Shown here: piece after piece, positions 39,847-48,800 of the stretch | Layout of the letters: each line of letters starts with the position of its first letter | Position numbering within the stretch: position 1 is the stretch's first letter | Assembly (NCBI GenBank): GCA_965637545.1 | Contig: OZ281501.1 | Span: 13,702,001 to 13,766,000 of the forward strand | DNA from: Phallusia mammillata | Taxonomy: Eukaryota | Direction: 5' to 3' | DNA length: 64,000 nt | Notes under the pieces: generated by a model | Seen by the model: the letters and a program-made list of their open reading frames with translations, nothing else | What the model was told of the DNA's origin: nothing | The model's database searches: none | Position numbers and translations under genes: made by a program

Positions 39847-42800
39847 TTAATGTTTGGCACTGCTTGAAAGCCTTTTTCGCATGCGAAGCAGCATGCTGTT
39901 ACTTCTCCTGCTTAACTCTATGCTCGCCTGTTGTTCCTCGGTGTTGTCATAATCCTTTGCTTTTGCCTTGGATTCCAGTGCTTCAGTAAACATTTGCACA
40001 GCCTCAGAATAGCGCAAAACGCTGTAATAAGACGCACCTAAATTGTGAAGACACAGCCCATGAACTTGCATCTCTTGTGCCTGCGCGCCGAATTCATCAT
40101 TTAAAAGAGCAAGAGCTGCTTTTATTGTTTCTTCTTCGCCTGTGCGATCTCCAACTAGAGCTTTGACGTGCGCTATATTAATGTTACACCAGGCTACACG
40201 TAAAGTAGTGAACTTTTTGTCTCCAGTTACTGCTGAGGCCACTTTAAATTTCAGGTGATGCATCACCGGGATCACATGTTTTTTCAGTTGTTGTTCGTAC
40301 TTCGACTTTGAGGATCGATTTGAGGCAAGCTTGATACACGTTTCCCTCATACCCAGCACACAGCTACTAATTCCTAAGATTGCGTTTTTAGGTTCAGACT
40401 CTAGTACCTCATAAAGGTACGCAGCAACTTGGTAAAACAGCAGTGATTCAAAGTGATTGCCTTTTCCTTCGAGGTTCTCGGCAAAGACTTTCACATCAAG
40501 AGGACGAGCGTCCACGTGACGAACAATGCTGTTTGCTACGTCACAGCAGGTTCTAGAAGCTTCTTCAAAATGACTGGTTTTCATGCAGCAAACGTGGTAT
40601 TGGACAAGAAACGCGCCGTCCCGTAGTTCGCTAGTCATTTTGTATTTGCTTGACATCAAGTTGTAAGCTTTGTCGTGTGAGCCTTTCTTGGTGAGTGAGG
40701 AAACTTCGTCTGTAACAAATGTAATCAGGTAAAAGCTACTATACGACTACAAATAAACCTTGGCTTACATAATAGCATAGATGTAGATGTTGTTGGTATA
40801 AAAACCATTGCAGTCGGATAAACATTTGATATTGTGCAATCACCTCAAATAGGTTTATCCAACTATATTTTTACTCTCGGGTGTAAATAAGAGACTCAAA
40901 CCATACAGTTAAAAATAGCCTACACAAAGTTTTTAATTGTAAAAGCTGATGTCACCTTTTAAAATGAAGACTTCTTCCAATTTTGGCTTGGTGTTTTCTA
41001 AACCTTTGAATATATGGTTGTATAATGACTGATTTGCATTTTTAAACAAACAGCTAACACTGACATGTATTAATTTACATACATATAAAATGTAACAACT
41101 AAATATGCAACTTTAGCCCCCATTTACGTCAAACTGCTTGTGACTTATTGCATTTGGGTAAATATATAATATGCACAATGAACTTAAATTAATCATAATC
41201 ACAGTATTGTCGCTGGGATAAGTGACTCACTTTGAGGTGATCGTGGAGACGATGTGTGTTGTGGAGTGACAATCGGTGACGGTCTGTCACTCTCCTGGCT
41301 ATTGTTTGTTGTCAAAGACACCGAATCTGCATCAAACGCAATCACGGTTATAAATATGTTACGTTAATACTACTGTTACGTCGTTTTCGCCAACTGTTGT
41401 GAACATAACTTTGCCCAGCAAAACGTATAACAATTGTCCTGTGACGCAACAGTTAGTGTTCCATTGCGTGACAATTAATGTTCTAATGCGTGACGTCAAT
41501 TGCCTGTGTACTGTGTATGTTGCAATCATTTGTAACTTGCCTCGTGGTGTACGTTTGTAAACTGCTGACAGGCATAATTTGAATTGAAGCCATCAATCTA
41601 AACTTTGATACCTTTATTTAGCAGCTAGAAAGTATAAATAAATTGCTGAGTTGATAAAGCTGCATTTGTGAATCATTTTGCTGGTAAGTTTGGCTTTGTA
41701 CTGTAATGTGAAGTTTTGTTCTAAAACTGTAAATGTTTGGTTATTTGTGCAGGATTTGTTCGGCCTTTAAAACATCATTAAATACCAAAACCCCTGTGGC
41801 CAAACAGTCGGTATGTTTACTTGTTGTGTTTCGAGTGCGATTTGTGCTTTATACGTTTTCGTTTTCATTCGCAGAAAAACCGGAATTGACCATACCATTA
41901 AAACGAATTGTCGTTCCTTTATGGTGTCCGCGTTTTTTATTGAGCCACATTGTGTGACGTTTTCGTGAAAACAGGGGAACACGCGACAGAAAACGTTACA
42001 TAAAAGTTTTTCGACTGGCCGACTGTCAATTGTCTAGTACCAACGCAATCACGACGAAGATGGCAGCAGACGATCCCGAATTCGATTTAGACGACGTGAA
42101 CCAACGCACGGAAGAATGGGTCGAAGCGAGTGTTCACTCCTTCCGCGATGGCGAACCCTCTACATCGAATCCGCTGGAGAATGTAGCGCAACGCCCACCC
42201 TCAGTGGATGGTTCGGTGATAAGTAGCGTGCGCACATTATCTAGTTCGGCTATCTTAGAAATGAAGCGGAGATCTAAATTAAAATTGCAAAGTTTACGTA
42301 TGCGAATACAGCAGAATTATGAGTTACAGTCTATCCAAAGGGAGAGGGAACGTGTTGAACGTGAAGAAGAAAGTCGGCACCGCGAAGAAGAGCGTCAGCG
42401 CCGCGAAGAAGAAGAACTTTGTTCGCGCGAAGAAAAGGATAGACGACGAAAATTGGATGAGATGGAAAAGGCAATCCGTTTCAAACACGCACTCCACATG
42501 GCGGAGCTGGAAGTGAACTCCTACGAGGAAGACCCCGTTGAAGTACCCCTATCTGTTCCATTGGAAGGATTAGGTACGGCAGTTACACAGACCTTGATTA
42601 CAAAGTCCAACGAACCAAGTAAGTCTGTTCCGTCACCTATTAAACCCAGAAAACTAGTTTTGAAGCCCGAAGCCACTCCGTTCGAGCCTAAATGCCGTTG
42701 TAATTGTGCAAACACCAGTAGTGTCGTTGGCGAAGTCCGCGAATTGTCTGTGTCTGATCTGCCAGTATGTGCTTTGCCGGAGCCCCAACCGTCGACTAGT

Positions 42801-45800
42801 AATCAGCGACCTGTTAAGAAAGATTCTAGACTGCCACCCCCACAGATATCAAAGTTTGCCGGTGATCCTATGGAGTACCATGCCTTTATTCGTAGCTTTA
42901 AATGCCATATTGCTGAACATGTTTCTGACGACGACGTGCGCCTCAGTTACTTGCAGCAATTTTGTGTCGGTGATGCTAACGATTTGATTAAGCATTGTTC
43001 CATGCTCAGTGGAGAAGGAGGATACGCCGAGGCCCTAAAACTGCTAAAGGAAAATTATGGCAAGGATCACATCATTGCGCGCACCTGCTTAAACCAACTA
43101 CAGTACGGACCGAAACTTCGCTCGGAAGACGTCCATAGCATGCAGAAATTCGCGAGGTTGATGAAGACATGTCAAGTGGTACTATCCCAAATCGAAGGCA
43201 ACGCAGGTTTGGACACATTTCAAAATTTGTTGGCGATTGTGCGTCGTTTGTCCAGTGACATGCAAGAGCAATGGGACAAAGAGGTCGCCCGTATAATTAA
43301 AACATACGATCGAGAACCTAATTTCGACGACCTCACCGAATTTGTCGATAATCAAGCTGCCGTGGCAAGTTCGTCGTTTAGACGGGCCCATCACCCCGTA
43401 CGGGAGACGCCTAGTGGTCAAAGAAAAAATAGGGCTGCGACGTACGTCGTGTCGTCTGAGCTGCCGGGAACTGAAGCCCCGCAGGCTCGCTGTTTGTTTT
43501 GTACAGGGCTCCATGATTTGACCACTTGCAATTCGTTTGAAAAGAAGCCTGTCTACCAACGATACGAATTTGCACGAAGGCAAAGACTGTGCTTTAAGTG
43601 TTTGCAGAAAGGACATAATGCAAGAGATTGCAAGGAGGAGGATCCGTGCAAGATCTCCGGTTGTGATTCCAACTCTCATCATACGCTGCTACATCGGGAG
43701 GTTTCTAGAGCAGAAGCCAACCGCAGTTCTGCTCCTGAAGAAAAGGTAACCAGTGAAGTTAATTCATTTCACTTGGCGTCAGATTCCAAGCCCTCTGCAA
43801 TATGTGGCAATACCAGTATATGTGGTGATATGTACATGAATATCGTACCAGTTCGGGCGCGAAATGGCAACATAGAATTTCTCACTTATGCATTTTTGGA
43901 CTCTGGTGCCACTAAATCTATGTGTAGTCAACGGCTAGTGGATGCCCTACACTTGCAAGGGGAGTCTCGTACTGTATCGCTTCGAACTGTAGGCCACGAG
44001 CAAACTATGTCAACAAAAATAGTTTCCCTGTCTGTTGCTCCTGCCTTCGATGATGGACCTAGTATTAATCTTAACAGTGTAATGGCCATCGATAAGCTTC
44101 CGGTAAAAACTAACAAGTTACCATCAAAGACTAAACTGAAAAGGATGTCATACTTGCGCGGTTTAGAGTTTCCACAGATCGAAGGTGGAGAAGTGACACT
44201 TATGATTGGCGTCGATGCTCCTGAACTGATGGTTTTCCAGGAGACGCGCTGCGGCAGCCGCGAACAACCCATTGCAGTAAAAACGGCCCTTGGGTGGTCT
44301 TTGTTGGGGCCATCGTTTGTGCCCACCAGCGGAACACGCATTGATTTAAACTACGTAAGTAGTTTTGACGACAACGTGAGCAAAGAGATCGACTGTCTGT
44401 GGAGAACCGATTTTTCTGATTTAACCATAATTGATGACAAGAGAATTTCGCGTGAAGACCGATCGGCGCTCGAAATTATGAAACGGGACGTGTTGCATGT
44501 AGACGGCCATTATCAGTTGCCCTTGCTGTGGAAAGGAAATCAAACTCAACTTCCGCCAAACCGCGTGTTGGCAGAAAGAAGACTCCGTTCTCTCGAACGA
44601 AGACTAAAGAAGGACGAGAAACTTCGTGAGCGATACGTTGGCACTGTGGAAACCTATATCCAAAAGGGATACGCGAAAAGGATCTCTTCGCACGATCGCG
44701 GCCAAAGTAAACGAGAGTGGTATCTTCCACATCACCCTGTTTTGCACCCGCGCAAGCCTGACAAGGTGCGCGTCGTGTTCGATTGTGCCGCAAAGCACGC
44801 AGGCGTTGCATTAAACGATGCCCTAATGAGTGGCCCAGATCTGATGAACAACTTAGTAGGCGTCCTGACAAGGTTCAGAAAGGAACCCGTGGCGGTTGTG
44901 TCAGACATTGAATCCATGTTTCATCAAATCCGGGTAAGGCCAGAAGACACTGCGAGCCTTCGTTTCTTGTGGTGGCCCAAGGGCGATCTGTCCAAGCCAG
45001 CGGAAGACCACGAGATGACTGTACATCTTTTTGGCGCAACATCCTCTCCGAGCTGCGCCGCTTTCAGCTTGCTCCAAACTGCGGAAGAGTTTGGCCACGA
45101 GTTCAGTGCTGCAGCTACTACAGCGCTAAAATCAAATTTCTACGTGGACGATTGCCTTGCAAGCGTGGCGACCGAGGACGAAGCAATTATGTTGGTGAAA
45201 GACTTAGGTCAGCTCCTGCAAAGAGGTGGCTTCCACCTAACCAAGTGGATGAGCAACAGTAATAGAGTTTTACAATCAATTCCTTCTGACGAACGGTCCA
45301 AGATGGCGAAGAATCATGATCTTAATTCGGACGTAGCTGGAAGAATTTTGGGCGTGTTTTGGAACGTCCCAAATGACGAATTTGGATTTGATGTGCAGAT
45401 GCCGAATAAGTCGCTGACGCGCCGTGGAATTTTGTCTGCCGTCAGTGCGCTGTACGACCCCTTAGGTCTTGTTGCTCCTGTTACAGTAAGTGCCAAAATA
45501 CTTTTGCAGGACCTTTGTCGTCAAGGGTTAGGATGGGACGAAGATATTTCAAATGAAGATGCTAATCGTTGGAGAAGCTGGATGGAGGGACTTCCTATGT
45601 TAAGCCAAGTACGGGTTCAACGCTGCATTAAACCTCCTTCCTTTGGAAAGATAGTTAAGATGGAAATGCACCATTTTGCTGACGCATCGTCTTCGGCCTA
45701 CGGGGCAGTTTCTTATCTGCGCCTTGTTAACCACAATACGCAGGTGCACTGTTGTTTTTTGCTTGGCAAGTCACGACTTGCACCGATACATACGGTATCC

Positions 45801-48800
45801 ATACCACGCTTGGAGTTGACGGCAGCGGTGCTAGCGGTTAAAATGGATGGCTTTCTGCGACGAGAGTTGGGCTGTCCCGACTGCGAATCGACGTTCTGGA
45901 CAGATTCCATGTCGGTGTTGATGAGCATTAGGAATTCTACAAAACGTTTCGAAACCTTTGTAGCAAACCGACTGGCAAAGATTGACAGTGGAAGCAGAAG
46001 TGAGCAGTGGCGACATGTTCCATCCAAATTAAACCCTGCCGACGACGCCTCACGTGGCTTGTCTGTGAAGAAAATGGTGAATAACAACGTTTGGCTAACC
46101 GGTCCACGGTTTCTTTGGGGTGACGAATCTACTTGGCCTAAAGAAGAAGAAGTTTCAAATAGAGATGATATTTTAATGGAAGCAAAGAAGGTCAGTGCAA
46201 ATTTTACGTGTGGAACCGCTTGCGAGACGGATTCTATCTCAAAACTGATCAATCATTACTCCGATTGGAATCGCCTACGACGTGCAACCGCTTGGTTGTT
46301 ACGGTATAAGCGCGTTTTATTGTCGAAACGGTGTGCAGATACAAATACGACCATTCCGAAGGGAACCCTTCAGGTTCAAGAGCTTCAAGAAGCTGAATTG
46401 GCACTGTTTCGAATTGTGCAACAACAAGCCTTTCCAGAGGTGCTTGAAAATCTGCGAAAAGGCAATGGTCAGTGGAAGAAAACGAAGAACTCTCGAACGT
46501 TTGACAAGCTTGGCCCCACCCTTAGCAACGGTCTCCTACGCGTTGGAGGGAGACTTGAATTGGCCTCTATTTCGGATGATGCGAAGCATCCTATTATACT
46601 TCCAGGCAGACATCACCTCACCGACTTACTGATTGTCAAGTTTCATAAGGACGTAGGTCACTCAGGAATGAGTCACACCTGGTCTGAAATCCGTCAAAAA
46701 TTTTGGATTATAAAGGGCGGAGCCGCTGTACGCCGTGTGTTGGGCAATTGTGTGTTTTGCAGGAAACGAAATGCGCCCGTTGGCGAGCAACTTATGGCCA
46801 GATTGCCGATTGATCGTGTGAACTCCCATAGCCCCGCGTTCACGTACGTTGGCGTTGATTATTTTGGACCGCTAATGGTGCGCCAAGCAAGAAGCCAAGT
46901 GAAGGTGTACGGCTGTCTATTTACCTGCATGACGGTCAGGGCAGTGCATCTGGAGGTAGCTGACAGTTTGTCAACGAGTGCTTTTATCAACTGCCTGCGA
47001 AGATTCATCGGACGACGTGGCAGACCAACTAAGATTTGCAGCGACAATGGAACAAATTTTGTCGGAGCCGTGCGTGAGCTAAAAGAGGCTATCGGAAGAT
47101 GGAATCAACAGAGCATTGATGACTTCTTGAGACAACAGGACATCCAATGGTCTTTTAATCCTCCTGCGGCAAGCCATATGGGTGGCGTCTGGGAAAGAAT
47201 GATCAGGTCTGTAAGAAGAGTTCTTTCTGCGTTGCTGACGGCACAAAGCGTGACCCGCGACACCCTTGAAACGGTGCTTGTTGAAGCGGAGTCCATTCTC
47301 AACAGTAGACCCATTGTTCCAGTGGTGATGGATCCACAATCGGACGAGCCGCTGACTCCCAATCATTTAATTTTGTTGCGTCCGTCGCCCAACATGCCAC
47401 CTGGCGTGTTCGTGAAGAAGGACTGTTACGTTCGCCACCATTGGCGACAAGTGCAATACCTGGCTGACCAATTTTGGCGTCGCTGGGTGCGAGAATACTT
47501 ACCCACTGTCATTGAACGACAGAAGTGGTTTTCGAAGCAGAGGAACGTCGAGGCAGGCGACCTAGTGTTGGTTGTGGACGAATCCATTCCGCGAGCACGT
47601 TGGAGAATCGGCCGAGTGATTTCGACCTTTCCGGATGCGCATGGTGTCGTGCGCTCTGCACTGGTAGGAACCGGTGCCACCTCCGTCAGACGACCCATCA
47701 CCAAACTGTGTTTAGTGATGGACTCCCGCGGTGATTGCGCGACCGGCAAATTGTAAACTGTTTGCGATGTTCATTTTCGTTCGTTTTGTTCGGTATATAT
47801 TCAACGACGTTTTGTGTTTTAGAATGTATGCTCCCCTGGAGATACATTCGGGTGGGGGTATGTTACGTCGTTTTCGCCAACTGTTGTGAACATAACTTTG
47901 CCCAGCAAAACGTATAACAATTGTCCTGTGACGCAACAGTTAGTGTTCCATTGCGTGACAATTAATGTTCTAATGCGTGACGTCAATTGCCTGTGTACTG
48001 TGTATGTTGCAATCATTTGTAACTTGCCTCGTGGTGTACGTTTGTAAACTGCTGACAGGCATAATTTGAATTGAAGCCATCAATCTAAACTTTGATACCT
48101 TTATTTAGCAGCTAGAAAGTATAAATAAATTGCTGAGTTGATAAAGCTGCATTTGTGAATCATTTTGCTGGTAAGTTTGGCTTTGTACTGTAATGTGAAG
48201 TTTTGTTCTAAAACTGTAAATGTTTGGTTATTTGTGCAGGATTTGTTCGGCCTTTAAAACATCATTAAATACCAAAACCCCTGTGGCCAAACAGTCGGTA
48301 TGTTTACTTGTTGTGTTTCGAGTGCGATTTGTGCTTTATACGTTTTCGTTTTCATTCGCAGAAAAACCGGAATTGACCATACCATTAAAACGAATTGTCG
48401 TTCCTTTATGGTGTCCGCGTTTTTTATTGAGCCACATTGTGTGACGTTTTCGTGAAAACAGGGGAACACGCGACAGAAAACGTTACAACTACAGGAAACC
48501 GTTTTGATCTTTTATGTCCTACTTACCAACATGGTCCGCGTGAAGACCTATCGACCTGCAAAATATTATAATAAGGTTTTACCCAAAACGCATAAAGTCC
48601 AACCTTGACCTTTGTACACAAAACTTACGATTTGAGTTTACTTATTCACTAACGTTAGCGTAAATGCGGCTGTACAAGGAAGGAACCCTTTAGATGCCCT
48701 GAGCACACGACTTTGGTGCCCGATGCCAATGTGGATTAATTGTGACTGGATAGTGGATAAGTAGCAAGCGAATAGAGTTTTAAGGCTAAATATTTTGATG

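Follow-up and report, generated by a model that had tools for sequence, protein, structure and literature searches.

A spliced LTR intron separates the two halves of a putative self-primer in a BEL/Pao retrotransposon of Phallusia mammillata

We analysed a window of 64,000 nucleotides of Phallusia mammillata (assembly GCA_965637545.1, contig OZ281501.1, positions 13,702,001 to 13,766,000 of the forward strand), which contains a very young, intact LTR retrotransposon of 7.1 kb. Its features are listed in Table 1, with position 1 being the first nucleotide of the window. The gag-pol product harbours Peptidase_A17 (3e-45), DUF1759, RVT_1, Integrase_H2C2 and DUF5641 domains, although the RVT_1 score of 20.3 bits is below the curated cut-off of 29.6 bits for that profile. 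Together with the direct LTRs, the short target duplication and the polypurine tract, this domain set identifies the element as a member of BEL/Pao.

Table 1. Features of the element and of its leader, in window coordinates.
Position	Strand	Feature	Details
41369-41373	+	Target-site duplication	ACTAC; second copy at 48488-48492
41374-42000	+	5' LTR	627 bp, TG..CA ends, 100% identical to the 3' LTR
41633-41642	+	TATA box overlapping an AATAAA hexamer	TATAAATAAA; start site about 30 nt downstream inferred
41684-41752	+	Candidate intron 1	69 nt, CTG/GTAAGT..GTGCAG; holds uATGs 41706 and 41733
41753-41810	+	Exon between the introns	58 nt; last 6 nt (41805-41810, CAGTCG) are the left half of the primer sequence
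41811-41874	+	Intron 2	64 nt, TCG/GTATGT..TCGCAG; holds uATG 41813
41875-41880	+	First 6 nt of the exon after intron 2	AAAAAC, right half of the primer sequence; inferred RNase H cut after 41880
41897-41902	+	Candidate poly(A) signal	ATTAAA followed by a GT/T-rich stretch, downstream of the junction as the model requires; read from the sequence
41921-41968	+	uORF of 15 codons	Starts at the only uATG left after both splices
41953-42000	+	Predicted 12-bp stem at the LTR end	41953-41964 with 41989-42000, one G-U pair; resembles a U5-IR stem-loop; outer motifs (GTGTGACG / CGTTACA) recur in sister families
42006-42017	+	Primer-binding position	GTTTTTCGACTG, exact reverse complement of the spliced junction CAGTCG/AAAAAC
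42060-47756	+	gag-pol ORF	Single, intact, 1898 aa
47850-47860	+	Polypurine tract	Immediately before the 3' LTR
47861-48487	+	3' LTR	Intron copies at 48171-48239 and 48298-48361 (offset 6487); inferred source of the introns in progeny copies

A preliminary description of this locus, based on the sequence alone, had pointed out two tandem mini-introns with GT..AG ends in both LTRs, with three of the four ATGs of the leader falling inside them, and these sequence observations all proved correct. The ATGs between 41640 and the gag ATG at 42060 are exactly 41706, 41733, 41813 and 41921. Intron-like candidates defined by strict signals occur at 0.2-0.4 per kb in the window, but tandem pairs of them are found only in the two LTRs and at two other places, which look like host introns. 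For this element alone, the location of three of four ATGs inside introns is not significant (about P = 0.11, binomial estimate).

We then looked for the exon-exon junctions in RNA, the test that had been proposed for the two introns. In one sequencing run that is probably RNA (X1), a 54-nt contig (depth 26.6) joins 41810 to 41875 with exact GT..AG ends, beside the unspliced path (depth 34.6). The support is thus a single short contig in a run whose RNA nature is itself a guess, and raw reads were not mapped. Nevertheless, contigs of X1 run from the internal region into the LTR and from the LTR end into the leader with no insertion flanks, as RNA would, whereas a DNA run (X13) has no such joint, and the genome holds neither junction at up to 3 mismatches. 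Intron 2 fulfils the criteria of a U2-type spliceosomal intron, namely GT..AG ends with extended consensus and a pyrimidine tract, an exon-exon junction in RNA and no such junction in DNA. In contrast, we observed no joint and no break of the X1 contig at 41683/41753 for intron 1, although contigs can miss rare forms. Furthermore, a host-LTR read-through contig of another run (X9) keeps intron 1 and enters intron 2 unspliced. An exact look-up of the gag-pol product with either start codon, meant to retrieve transcript contigs that carry the leader, returned nothing, although records near this genome may have been absent from the search.

Alignments of related copies, also suggested beforehand, showed the expected conservation of the splice signals. 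The interior of intron 2 exists as two haplotypes and differs at 16-18 of 64 sites among the diverged copies, while the splice cores are intact in all but one (L034) of the 16 copies aligned and unchanged in the 12 that were scored. The primer-binding position is invariant in all diverged 5' copies of this family. For intron 1, the donor and acceptor are conserved against a diverged sister LTR (L063), and the same layout, with GTAAG..YAG introns on both sides of an exon of 58-70 nt and AAAACCG after the second, occurs in L063 and in two other sister LTRs, L053 and L069. The sister families were sampled through short 5' and 3' pieces. A global alignment of the LTR with that of another family (L044) was uninformative because the two are too diverged.

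Intron-less LTR copies had likewise been put forward as a test. None was found for this particular family, either among the 40 best LTR matches, nearly all copies retaining the introns, or with two short junction patterns searched in the genome. However, in a sister family the LTRs of one element (L055) lack all three GT..AG introns precisely, including the L053 intron that is homologous to intron 1, and another copy (L084) lacks only the first, exactly.

Next we examined the primer-binding region. No TGG is present within 15 nt of the LTR end, and the TGG at 42016-42018 is not conserved in sister families, but the host tRNA set was not compared, so that these data neither establish nor exclude the tRNA-complementary primer-binding site usually described for BEL/Pao elements. 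Positions 42006-42017 are complementary at 12 of 12 nt to the junction created by removal of intron 2, and no contiguous complement of 8 nt or more to 42001-42022 exists anywhere in the element. With intron candidates defined by strict signals, 1 of 5000 shuffles reaches 12 nt. A more liberal search, with any GT..AG pair of 40-400 nt, yielded per-family shuffle values of only 0.004-0.06, and one reversed-sequence control reached 12 nt, through a non-intron-like pair of 380 nt; the strict definition was adopted for this reason. An 8-bp match between the unspliced LTR (41804-41811) and 42019-42026 was rejected as the primer because 183 of 1000 shuffles do as well and because it lies away from the primer position.

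Five other, diverged BEL/Pao families of this genome have the same arrangement with different letters, namely AGTTG/AAAAAC, ACAGTTG/AAAC, AAACTCTG/AAAAC, AGTTTG/AAAC and AATAGTTG/AAAAC. Each match spans a canonical intron of 62-229 nt and lies 3-8 nt after the LTR, and 0-5 of 5000 shuffles reach each match. Every primer site matches the junction of its own family at least as well as that of any other family. As the families are related, the shared part of the motif is inherited and only the differences count as independent support. The match is A/T-rich, and minimum-free-energy folds of spliced and unspliced leaders show the long-range duplex in only one of the six families (L044), which neither supports nor refutes the pairing. 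Families or copies without that intron, L041, L042, L047 (15 nt) and L055, carry the complement contiguously.

A census of ATGs over the six families showed that the leader exons are depleted of them, with 10 observed against 42 expected (P = 3e-9), while the introns are not (35 against 22), nor is the upstream part of the LTR (33 against 36). This is as expected if the spliced RNA is the translated one, and it is only across families that the pattern becomes significant.

Our best explanation is that the LTR of this element contains host-type spliceosomal introns. What the analyses show is that intron 2 is spliced, that the 12 nt at the primer-binding position are complementary only to the exon-exon junction that this splice creates, and that the match between junction and primer site covaries across six diverged families of the genome. 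From there on the mechanism is inferred. We propose, with a probability of roughly 0.6, that reverse transcription is self-primed as in Tf1, but with a primer assembled by the spliceosome. The spliced 5' leader would fold back onto the primer site and be cut by RNase H, a cleavage that was not assayed here. Minus-strand strong-stop DNA would then copy only 42005 down to 41881 and jump to the 3' LTR copy of that segment, which requires a poly(A) site downstream of 48368; the model fails with a site upstream of the intron-2 acceptor, and neither the poly(A) site nor the transcription start has been mapped. Everything upstream of the primer, both introns included, would be copied from the 3' LTR portion of the RNA. 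In this view the introns persist whenever that 3' copy is unspliced and are lost when it is spliced, as in the processed copies L055 and L084. The same splicing would remove ATG-rich intron sequence from an otherwise ATG-poor leader, so that the spliced RNA would also be the better gag-pol mRNA. Intron 1 is probably a real but less efficiently used intron, or its acceptor may be used in another way.

The interpretation offered in the preliminary description is partly supported. It held that splicing might switch between a translatable gag-pol mRNA, freed of upstream ATGs, and an unspliced, packaged genome, because an intron in U5 would persist only if unspliced RNA is the replication template. 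The removal of upstream ATGs is supported. The restriction of replication to unspliced RNA is not, and is contradicted in part, since the primer-binding position is complementary only to the spliced junction of intron 2 and the spliced 5' leader therefore appears to be needed for priming. The persistence of the introns is better explained by copying of the LTR part upstream of the primer from the 3' LTR copy in the RNA. Splicing of intron 1 is not supported either, as it shows no junction in the one informative run.

A broader reading, which we consider about as likely as not, is that in a clade of BEL/Pao retrotransposons the primer for reverse transcription is made by the spliceosome, that the 5' leader carries the complement of the primer-binding site only after an LTR intron is removed, and that the RNase H cut that frees it discards the spliced 5' part, so that the LTR introns are inherited from the unspliced 3' LTR. 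This would give a retroelement a built-in way to keep spliceosomal introns indefinitely. The element would gain what splicing offers, i.e. export, translation and the appearance of a host gene, and would restrict DNA synthesis to RNA that has passed through the splicing machinery. Retroelements are expected to lose introns because they copy themselves through processed RNA, yet here introns sit inside the LTR of a currently active family, and one of them interrupts the sequence that matches the primer-binding site. If the model holds, it provides a concrete mechanism for long-term intron retention by an LTR retrotransposon, extends self-priming from Ty3/gypsy to BEL/Pao, and links nuclear splicing to the start of reverse transcription, a coupling that we found described nowhere in the literature searched. 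It also bears on annotation, since tRNA-based detection of primer sites and intron-blind LTR models would misdescribe these elements, and on how hosts tell intron-less foreign RNA from their own.

The closest precedents are Tf1 of Schizosaccharomyces pombe and Tj1 of S. japonicus, which use no tRNA primer and whose primer-binding site just after the 5' LTR pairs with an upstream segment of the element's own RNA (PMC4600332). They also have a stem-loop at the end of U5, next to the primer site. However, they are Ty3/gypsy elements, and their primer is a contiguous stretch at the very 5' end of the mRNA. The element described here may work like Tf1 but does not belong to the Tf1/sushi lineage, and its complement lies inside the leader, split in the DNA by an intron. 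Its complement is probably not the extreme 5' end of the transcript, as a first exon of 6 nt is implausible. In HTLV-1/BLV and foamy viruses a functional 5' splice site lies in the R region of the LTR, which is thus partly intronic in some RNAs, but the acceptor is far downstream, and the spliced RNAs are subgenomic mRNAs that are not reverse transcribed. Here donor and acceptor both lie within the LTR, and the spliced junction matches the primer site. The host spliceosome also acts on RNAs of copia, gypsy and roo-type elements, with different roles for spliced and unspliced forms, but those introns span coding sequence, produce gag or env mRNAs, are not mini-introns within the LTR, and have no link to priming.

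Among alternative explanations, it is possible, though less likely than not, that intron 1 is not a cis-spliced intron in this family. Its acceptor (41752/41753) might serve for spliced-leader trans-splicing, or the start site might lie downstream of it, such that only intron 2 would matter for the 5' leader. This would be consistent with the absence of an intron-1 junction in X1 while intron 2 shows one, and with a first exon of only about 20 nt if the start site is inferred from the TATA box; a leader tip of 16 nt would be clipped from contigs. Nevertheless, the conservation of donor and acceptor against L063 and the precise absence of homologous upstream introns from L055 and L084 argue against it.

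Two other possibilities appear unlikely, to a similar degree. In the first, the packaged template is the fully unspliced RNA, and a second, spliced RNA, also the mRNA, supplies the junction sequence as primer in trans. This would explain the complementarity and the persistence of introns without any asymmetry of splicing between the 5' and 3' LTRs, and spliced and unspliced forms coexist in X1. However, there is no evidence for co-packaging or trans use, an additional cleavage of a second RNA is needed, and to our knowledge Tf1 is described as primed by its own 5' segment (PMC4600332). In the second, splicing only yields a translatable mRNA, unspliced RNA is the genome, and a tRNA or another primer is used, the complementarity being an inherited coincidence or serving another RNA-structure role such as exon tethering, masking of the primer site or dimerization. 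The ATG census, the retention of introns in nearly all copies and the TGG at 42016-42018 are in its favour, as is the presence in some sister families of a local inverted repeat that can also pair with the primer site. Nevertheless, that TGG is 15 nt from the LTR and not conserved, and the complementarity sits at the canonical primer position, covaries in six families and is contiguous in the intron-less LTRs.

Lastly, that the intron-like motifs are chance or cryptic sites and the X1 junction assembly noise or a rare deleted DNA copy in that animal is very unlikely despite the single contig, given the exact GT..AG ends at a depth comparable to that of the unspliced path, the absence of the junction from the DNA run and the genome, the conservation of the signals across families and the precise loss of introns from sister-family copies.

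The sequence under study lies in the 5' LTR of an intact BEL/Pao retrotransposon. The two LTRs are identical, end in TG..CA and are flanked by a 5-bp duplication, ACTAC, with a purine tract directly before the 3' LTR. Between them lies one open reading frame of 1898 aa that carries DUF1759, RVT_1, Peptidase_A17, Integrase_H2C2 and DUF5641. The window contains no N. The 240-Mb genome holds at least 12 full-length copies whose LTRs match this one at 99.5-100%, including eight pairs at exactly 100%, plus many copies at 90-96%. Thus, the family has been active very recently. The preliminary description had placed two GT..AG segments separated by a 58-nt exon in this LTR, their copies in the 3' LTR, the TATAAATAAA motif and four leader ATGs, and this observation held, all of its coordinates being correct.

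Coordinates of features of the element and of related loci (window positions unless another locus is named; loci as genome:contig:positions)
Feature	Position	Remark
5' LTR	41374-42000	627 bp
TATAAATAAA	41633-41642	
Assumed start site	about 41664	
Intron 1, predicted exon-exon joint	41683/41753	
Intron 2, exon-exon joint	41810/41875	
Second complementarity	41804-41811 with 42019-42026	8 bp
Intron-2 interior, two haplotypes	41823-41872	with copies L026-L040
Inferred RNase H cut	after 41880	
ATTAAA	41897	
uATG left in the fully spliced leader	41921	uORF of 15 codons
Predicted stem	41953-41964 with 41989-42000	12 bp
Primer site	42006-42017	12 nt, five bases after the LTR
Open reading frame	ATG 42060, stop at 47756	1898 aa
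3' LTR	47861-48487	627 bp
Run X9 contig	41374-41822	
Run X5 contig	41374-41646	
L055, with L056	G000:C1:7162601-7164201	sister-family element
L084	G000:C8:12292866-12294466	sister-family element
L079 and L046	G000:C8:14817200-14818200 and 14823240-14824690	BEL/Pao family with a 523-bp LTR
L042, 16-mer	LTR positions about 257-272 of 386	reverse strand
L047, upstream intron candidate	LTR positions about 490-593	GTGAGT..TTTCAG

We next looked for the two exon-exon joints in sequencing runs, as the preliminary description had proposed, using assembled contigs. The contigs of run X1 total 32.6 Mb and pass from the internal region into the LTR, and from the LTR end into the leader, without any insertion flanks, as RNA would. 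In this run a 54-nt contig with a depth of 26.6 joins the two sides of intron 2 with GT..AG ends, exactly at the predicted positions, and the unspliced path is present beside it with a depth of 34.6 for this subfamily. The large X1 contig ends at 41810 and starts again at 41875, as expected for a splice bubble. Nevertheless, this RNA evidence is a single contig from a run whose type is a guess. DNA run X13 shows no such joint, and the genome holds neither spliced junction at up to 3 mismatches. Intron 2 is therefore confirmed at family level, because its flanking exons are identical among subfamilies. In contrast, there is neither a joint nor a break of the X1 contig at intron 1, which is not confirmed by RNA. 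In run X9, a host-to-LTR read-through contig keeps intron 1 and enters intron 2 unspliced. Together with a contig of run X5, it joins unrelated, presumably host, sequence to the LTR start and reads through it unspliced. These contigs are either host-LTR chimeric transcripts from other insertions or DNA carried in those runs.

Whether the splice signals are kept while the intron interiors drift had also been put forward as a test, and we compared sixteen copies at 90-96% identity with this LTR. The interior of intron 2 exists in two forms that differ at 16-18 of 64 positions, whereas GTATGT, the pyrimidine tract, CAG and the flanking exons are kept. The two forms are distributed independently of divergence elsewhere in the LTR, a mosaic that suggests recombination between subfamilies. 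Intron 1 differs at only 2-3 sites, no more than the rest of the LTR, and this comparison thus says nothing about it. One old truncated copy, L034, has changes at the intron-1 donor and the intron-2 acceptor.

Analysis of the sequence that follows the LTR gave an unexpected result. The primer site is the exact reverse complement of CAGTCG/AAAAAC (the slash marks the splice junction), i.e. of the last six bases before intron 2 joined to the first six after it, and in the unspliced LTR only the two halves match. Nothing of 8 nt or more in the whole 7.1-kb element is complementary to 42001-42022. With intron candidates defined beforehand by strict signals, seven of them in this LTR, 1 of 5000 shuffles of the post-LTR sequence reaches 12 nt. 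However, a more liberal search gave only moderate significance and one spurious control match, and folding does not favour the duplex. The primer site is invariant in every diverged 5' copy of the family. The second complementarity listed in the table covers the 5' splice site of intron 2 in the unspliced RNA and is kept through a G-U pair in diverged copies. It may be chance, as 183 of 1000 shuffles do as well, or it may mask the splice site.

We then sampled other BEL/Pao families from Peptidase_A17 hits. Five further LTR families, too diverged to align globally with this one, show the same arrangement with different letters.

Splice junctions complementary to the primer site in five further BEL/Pao LTR families (the slash marks the junction)
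Representative loci	Junction	Intron length
L044, L049, L059, L065, L077	AGTTG/AAAAAC	about 228 nt
L053, L057, L067	(A)ACAGTTG/AAAC	62 nt
L063	AAACTCTG/AAAAC	70 nt
L043	AGTTTG/AAAC	65 nt
L069, L071, L073, L075	(AAT)AGTTG/AAAAC	64-65 nt

In each case the match spans a canonical intron and lies 3-8 nt after the LTR. The matrix of primer sites against junctions peaks at each family's own junction, L053 and L057 being copies of one family with the same junction. The changes are compensatory: TCG/CGA against TTG/CAA, runs of 3, 4 or 5 A against runs of 3, 4 or 5 T, and CTCTG/CAGAG. The matches are A/T-rich, and the families are related, so that only the differences between them count as independent support. 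Shuffles reach the observed length in 0-5 of 5000 per family. In L053, L057, L059 and L063, the first 40 nt after the LTR contain a local inverted repeat of 7-9 nt, 10-20 nt downstream of the primer site, that can pair with it, possibly as a masking hairpin. This repeat is absent from the window's element.

Four LTRs without that intron carry the complement contiguously, namely L041 and L042 (10 nt), L047 (15 nt, with a sequence resembling the spliced junction) and L055. One BEL/Pao family, represented by L079 and L046, has an LTR that does not end in CA, and no primer-site complement was found for it, either contiguous or across a junction. L055 is an element of the L053 family. Both LTRs of L055 lack all three GT..AG introns of that LTR precisely, which makes its primer complement contiguous. 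L084 lacks only the first intron, and its sequence equals the predicted exon-exon join, while four other copies, L080-L083, keep all three introns. These processed LTRs are DNA proof of splicing in a sister family. The layout exon/GTAAG..YAG/exon of 58-70 nt/GTAAG..YAG/AAAACCG is shared by this element, L063, L053 and L069. The window's intron 1 is therefore the positional homologue of an intron proven in L053. Although this is not direct evidence, it makes intron 1 slightly more likely real than not.

With the assumed start site, the fully spliced leader keeps one uATG, whereas the unspliced leader has four. For this element alone that distribution is not significant. Over six families, however, the exonic leader holds 10 ATGs against 42 expected (P = 3e-9), the introns hold 35 against 22, and the LTR part upstream holds 33 against 36. 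The proposal of the preliminary description, that splicing may act as a switch between a translatable mRNA and an unspliced, packaged genome, is thus partly supported, in that the census supports the view that the spliced RNA is the translated one.

The splicing of intron 2, the complementarity of the junction to the primer site with its covariation, and the precise loss of introns in sister copies are shown by these analyses, while the remainder of the mechanism is inferred by analogy with Tf1/Tj1 (PMC4600332). In this view, the spliced leader would anneal to the primer site and RNase H would cut after the junction-derived segment. Strong-stop DNA would cover only 42005 to 41881 and transfer to the 3' LTR, and the LTR part upstream of the primer, introns included, would then be copied from the 3' LTR portion of the RNA. 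This scheme accounts for a primer that needs splicing together with introns that persist. If strong-stop DNA copied the spliced leader to its end, every cycle would erase intron 2. Searches of a literature collection lacking many subscription journals found nothing relevant on LTR-internal introns, on BEL/Pao primer sites or on links between self-priming and splicing. The model predicts RNA molecules that are spliced at the 5' copy and unspliced at the 3' copy, and a poly(A) site downstream of the intron-2 acceptor. Neither the start site nor the poly(A) site was mapped, but the ATTAAA hexamer, followed by a GT/T-rich stretch, fits, and sister families have AATAAA-like hexamers in the same region. 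One speculation is that splicing within the 3' LTR would leave a junction far downstream of the stop codon, which could expose such RNAs to nonsense-mediated decay and would favour templates with an unspliced 3' LTR.

The predicted stem closes the LTR end just before the primer site and resembles the U5-IR stem that Tf1 needs. Its outer motifs (GTGTGACG / CGTTACA) recur in sister families whose inner sequence differs. The L047 family keeps an upstream intron candidate but has the primer complement contiguous, and it looks as if only the junction intron was lost. Lastly, the L042 LTR contains a 16-mer that matches 15 of 16 bases of the ascidian spliced leader and lies 12 nt upstream of that family's contiguous primer-site complement, as if a trans-spliced RNA had been copied into the LTR.
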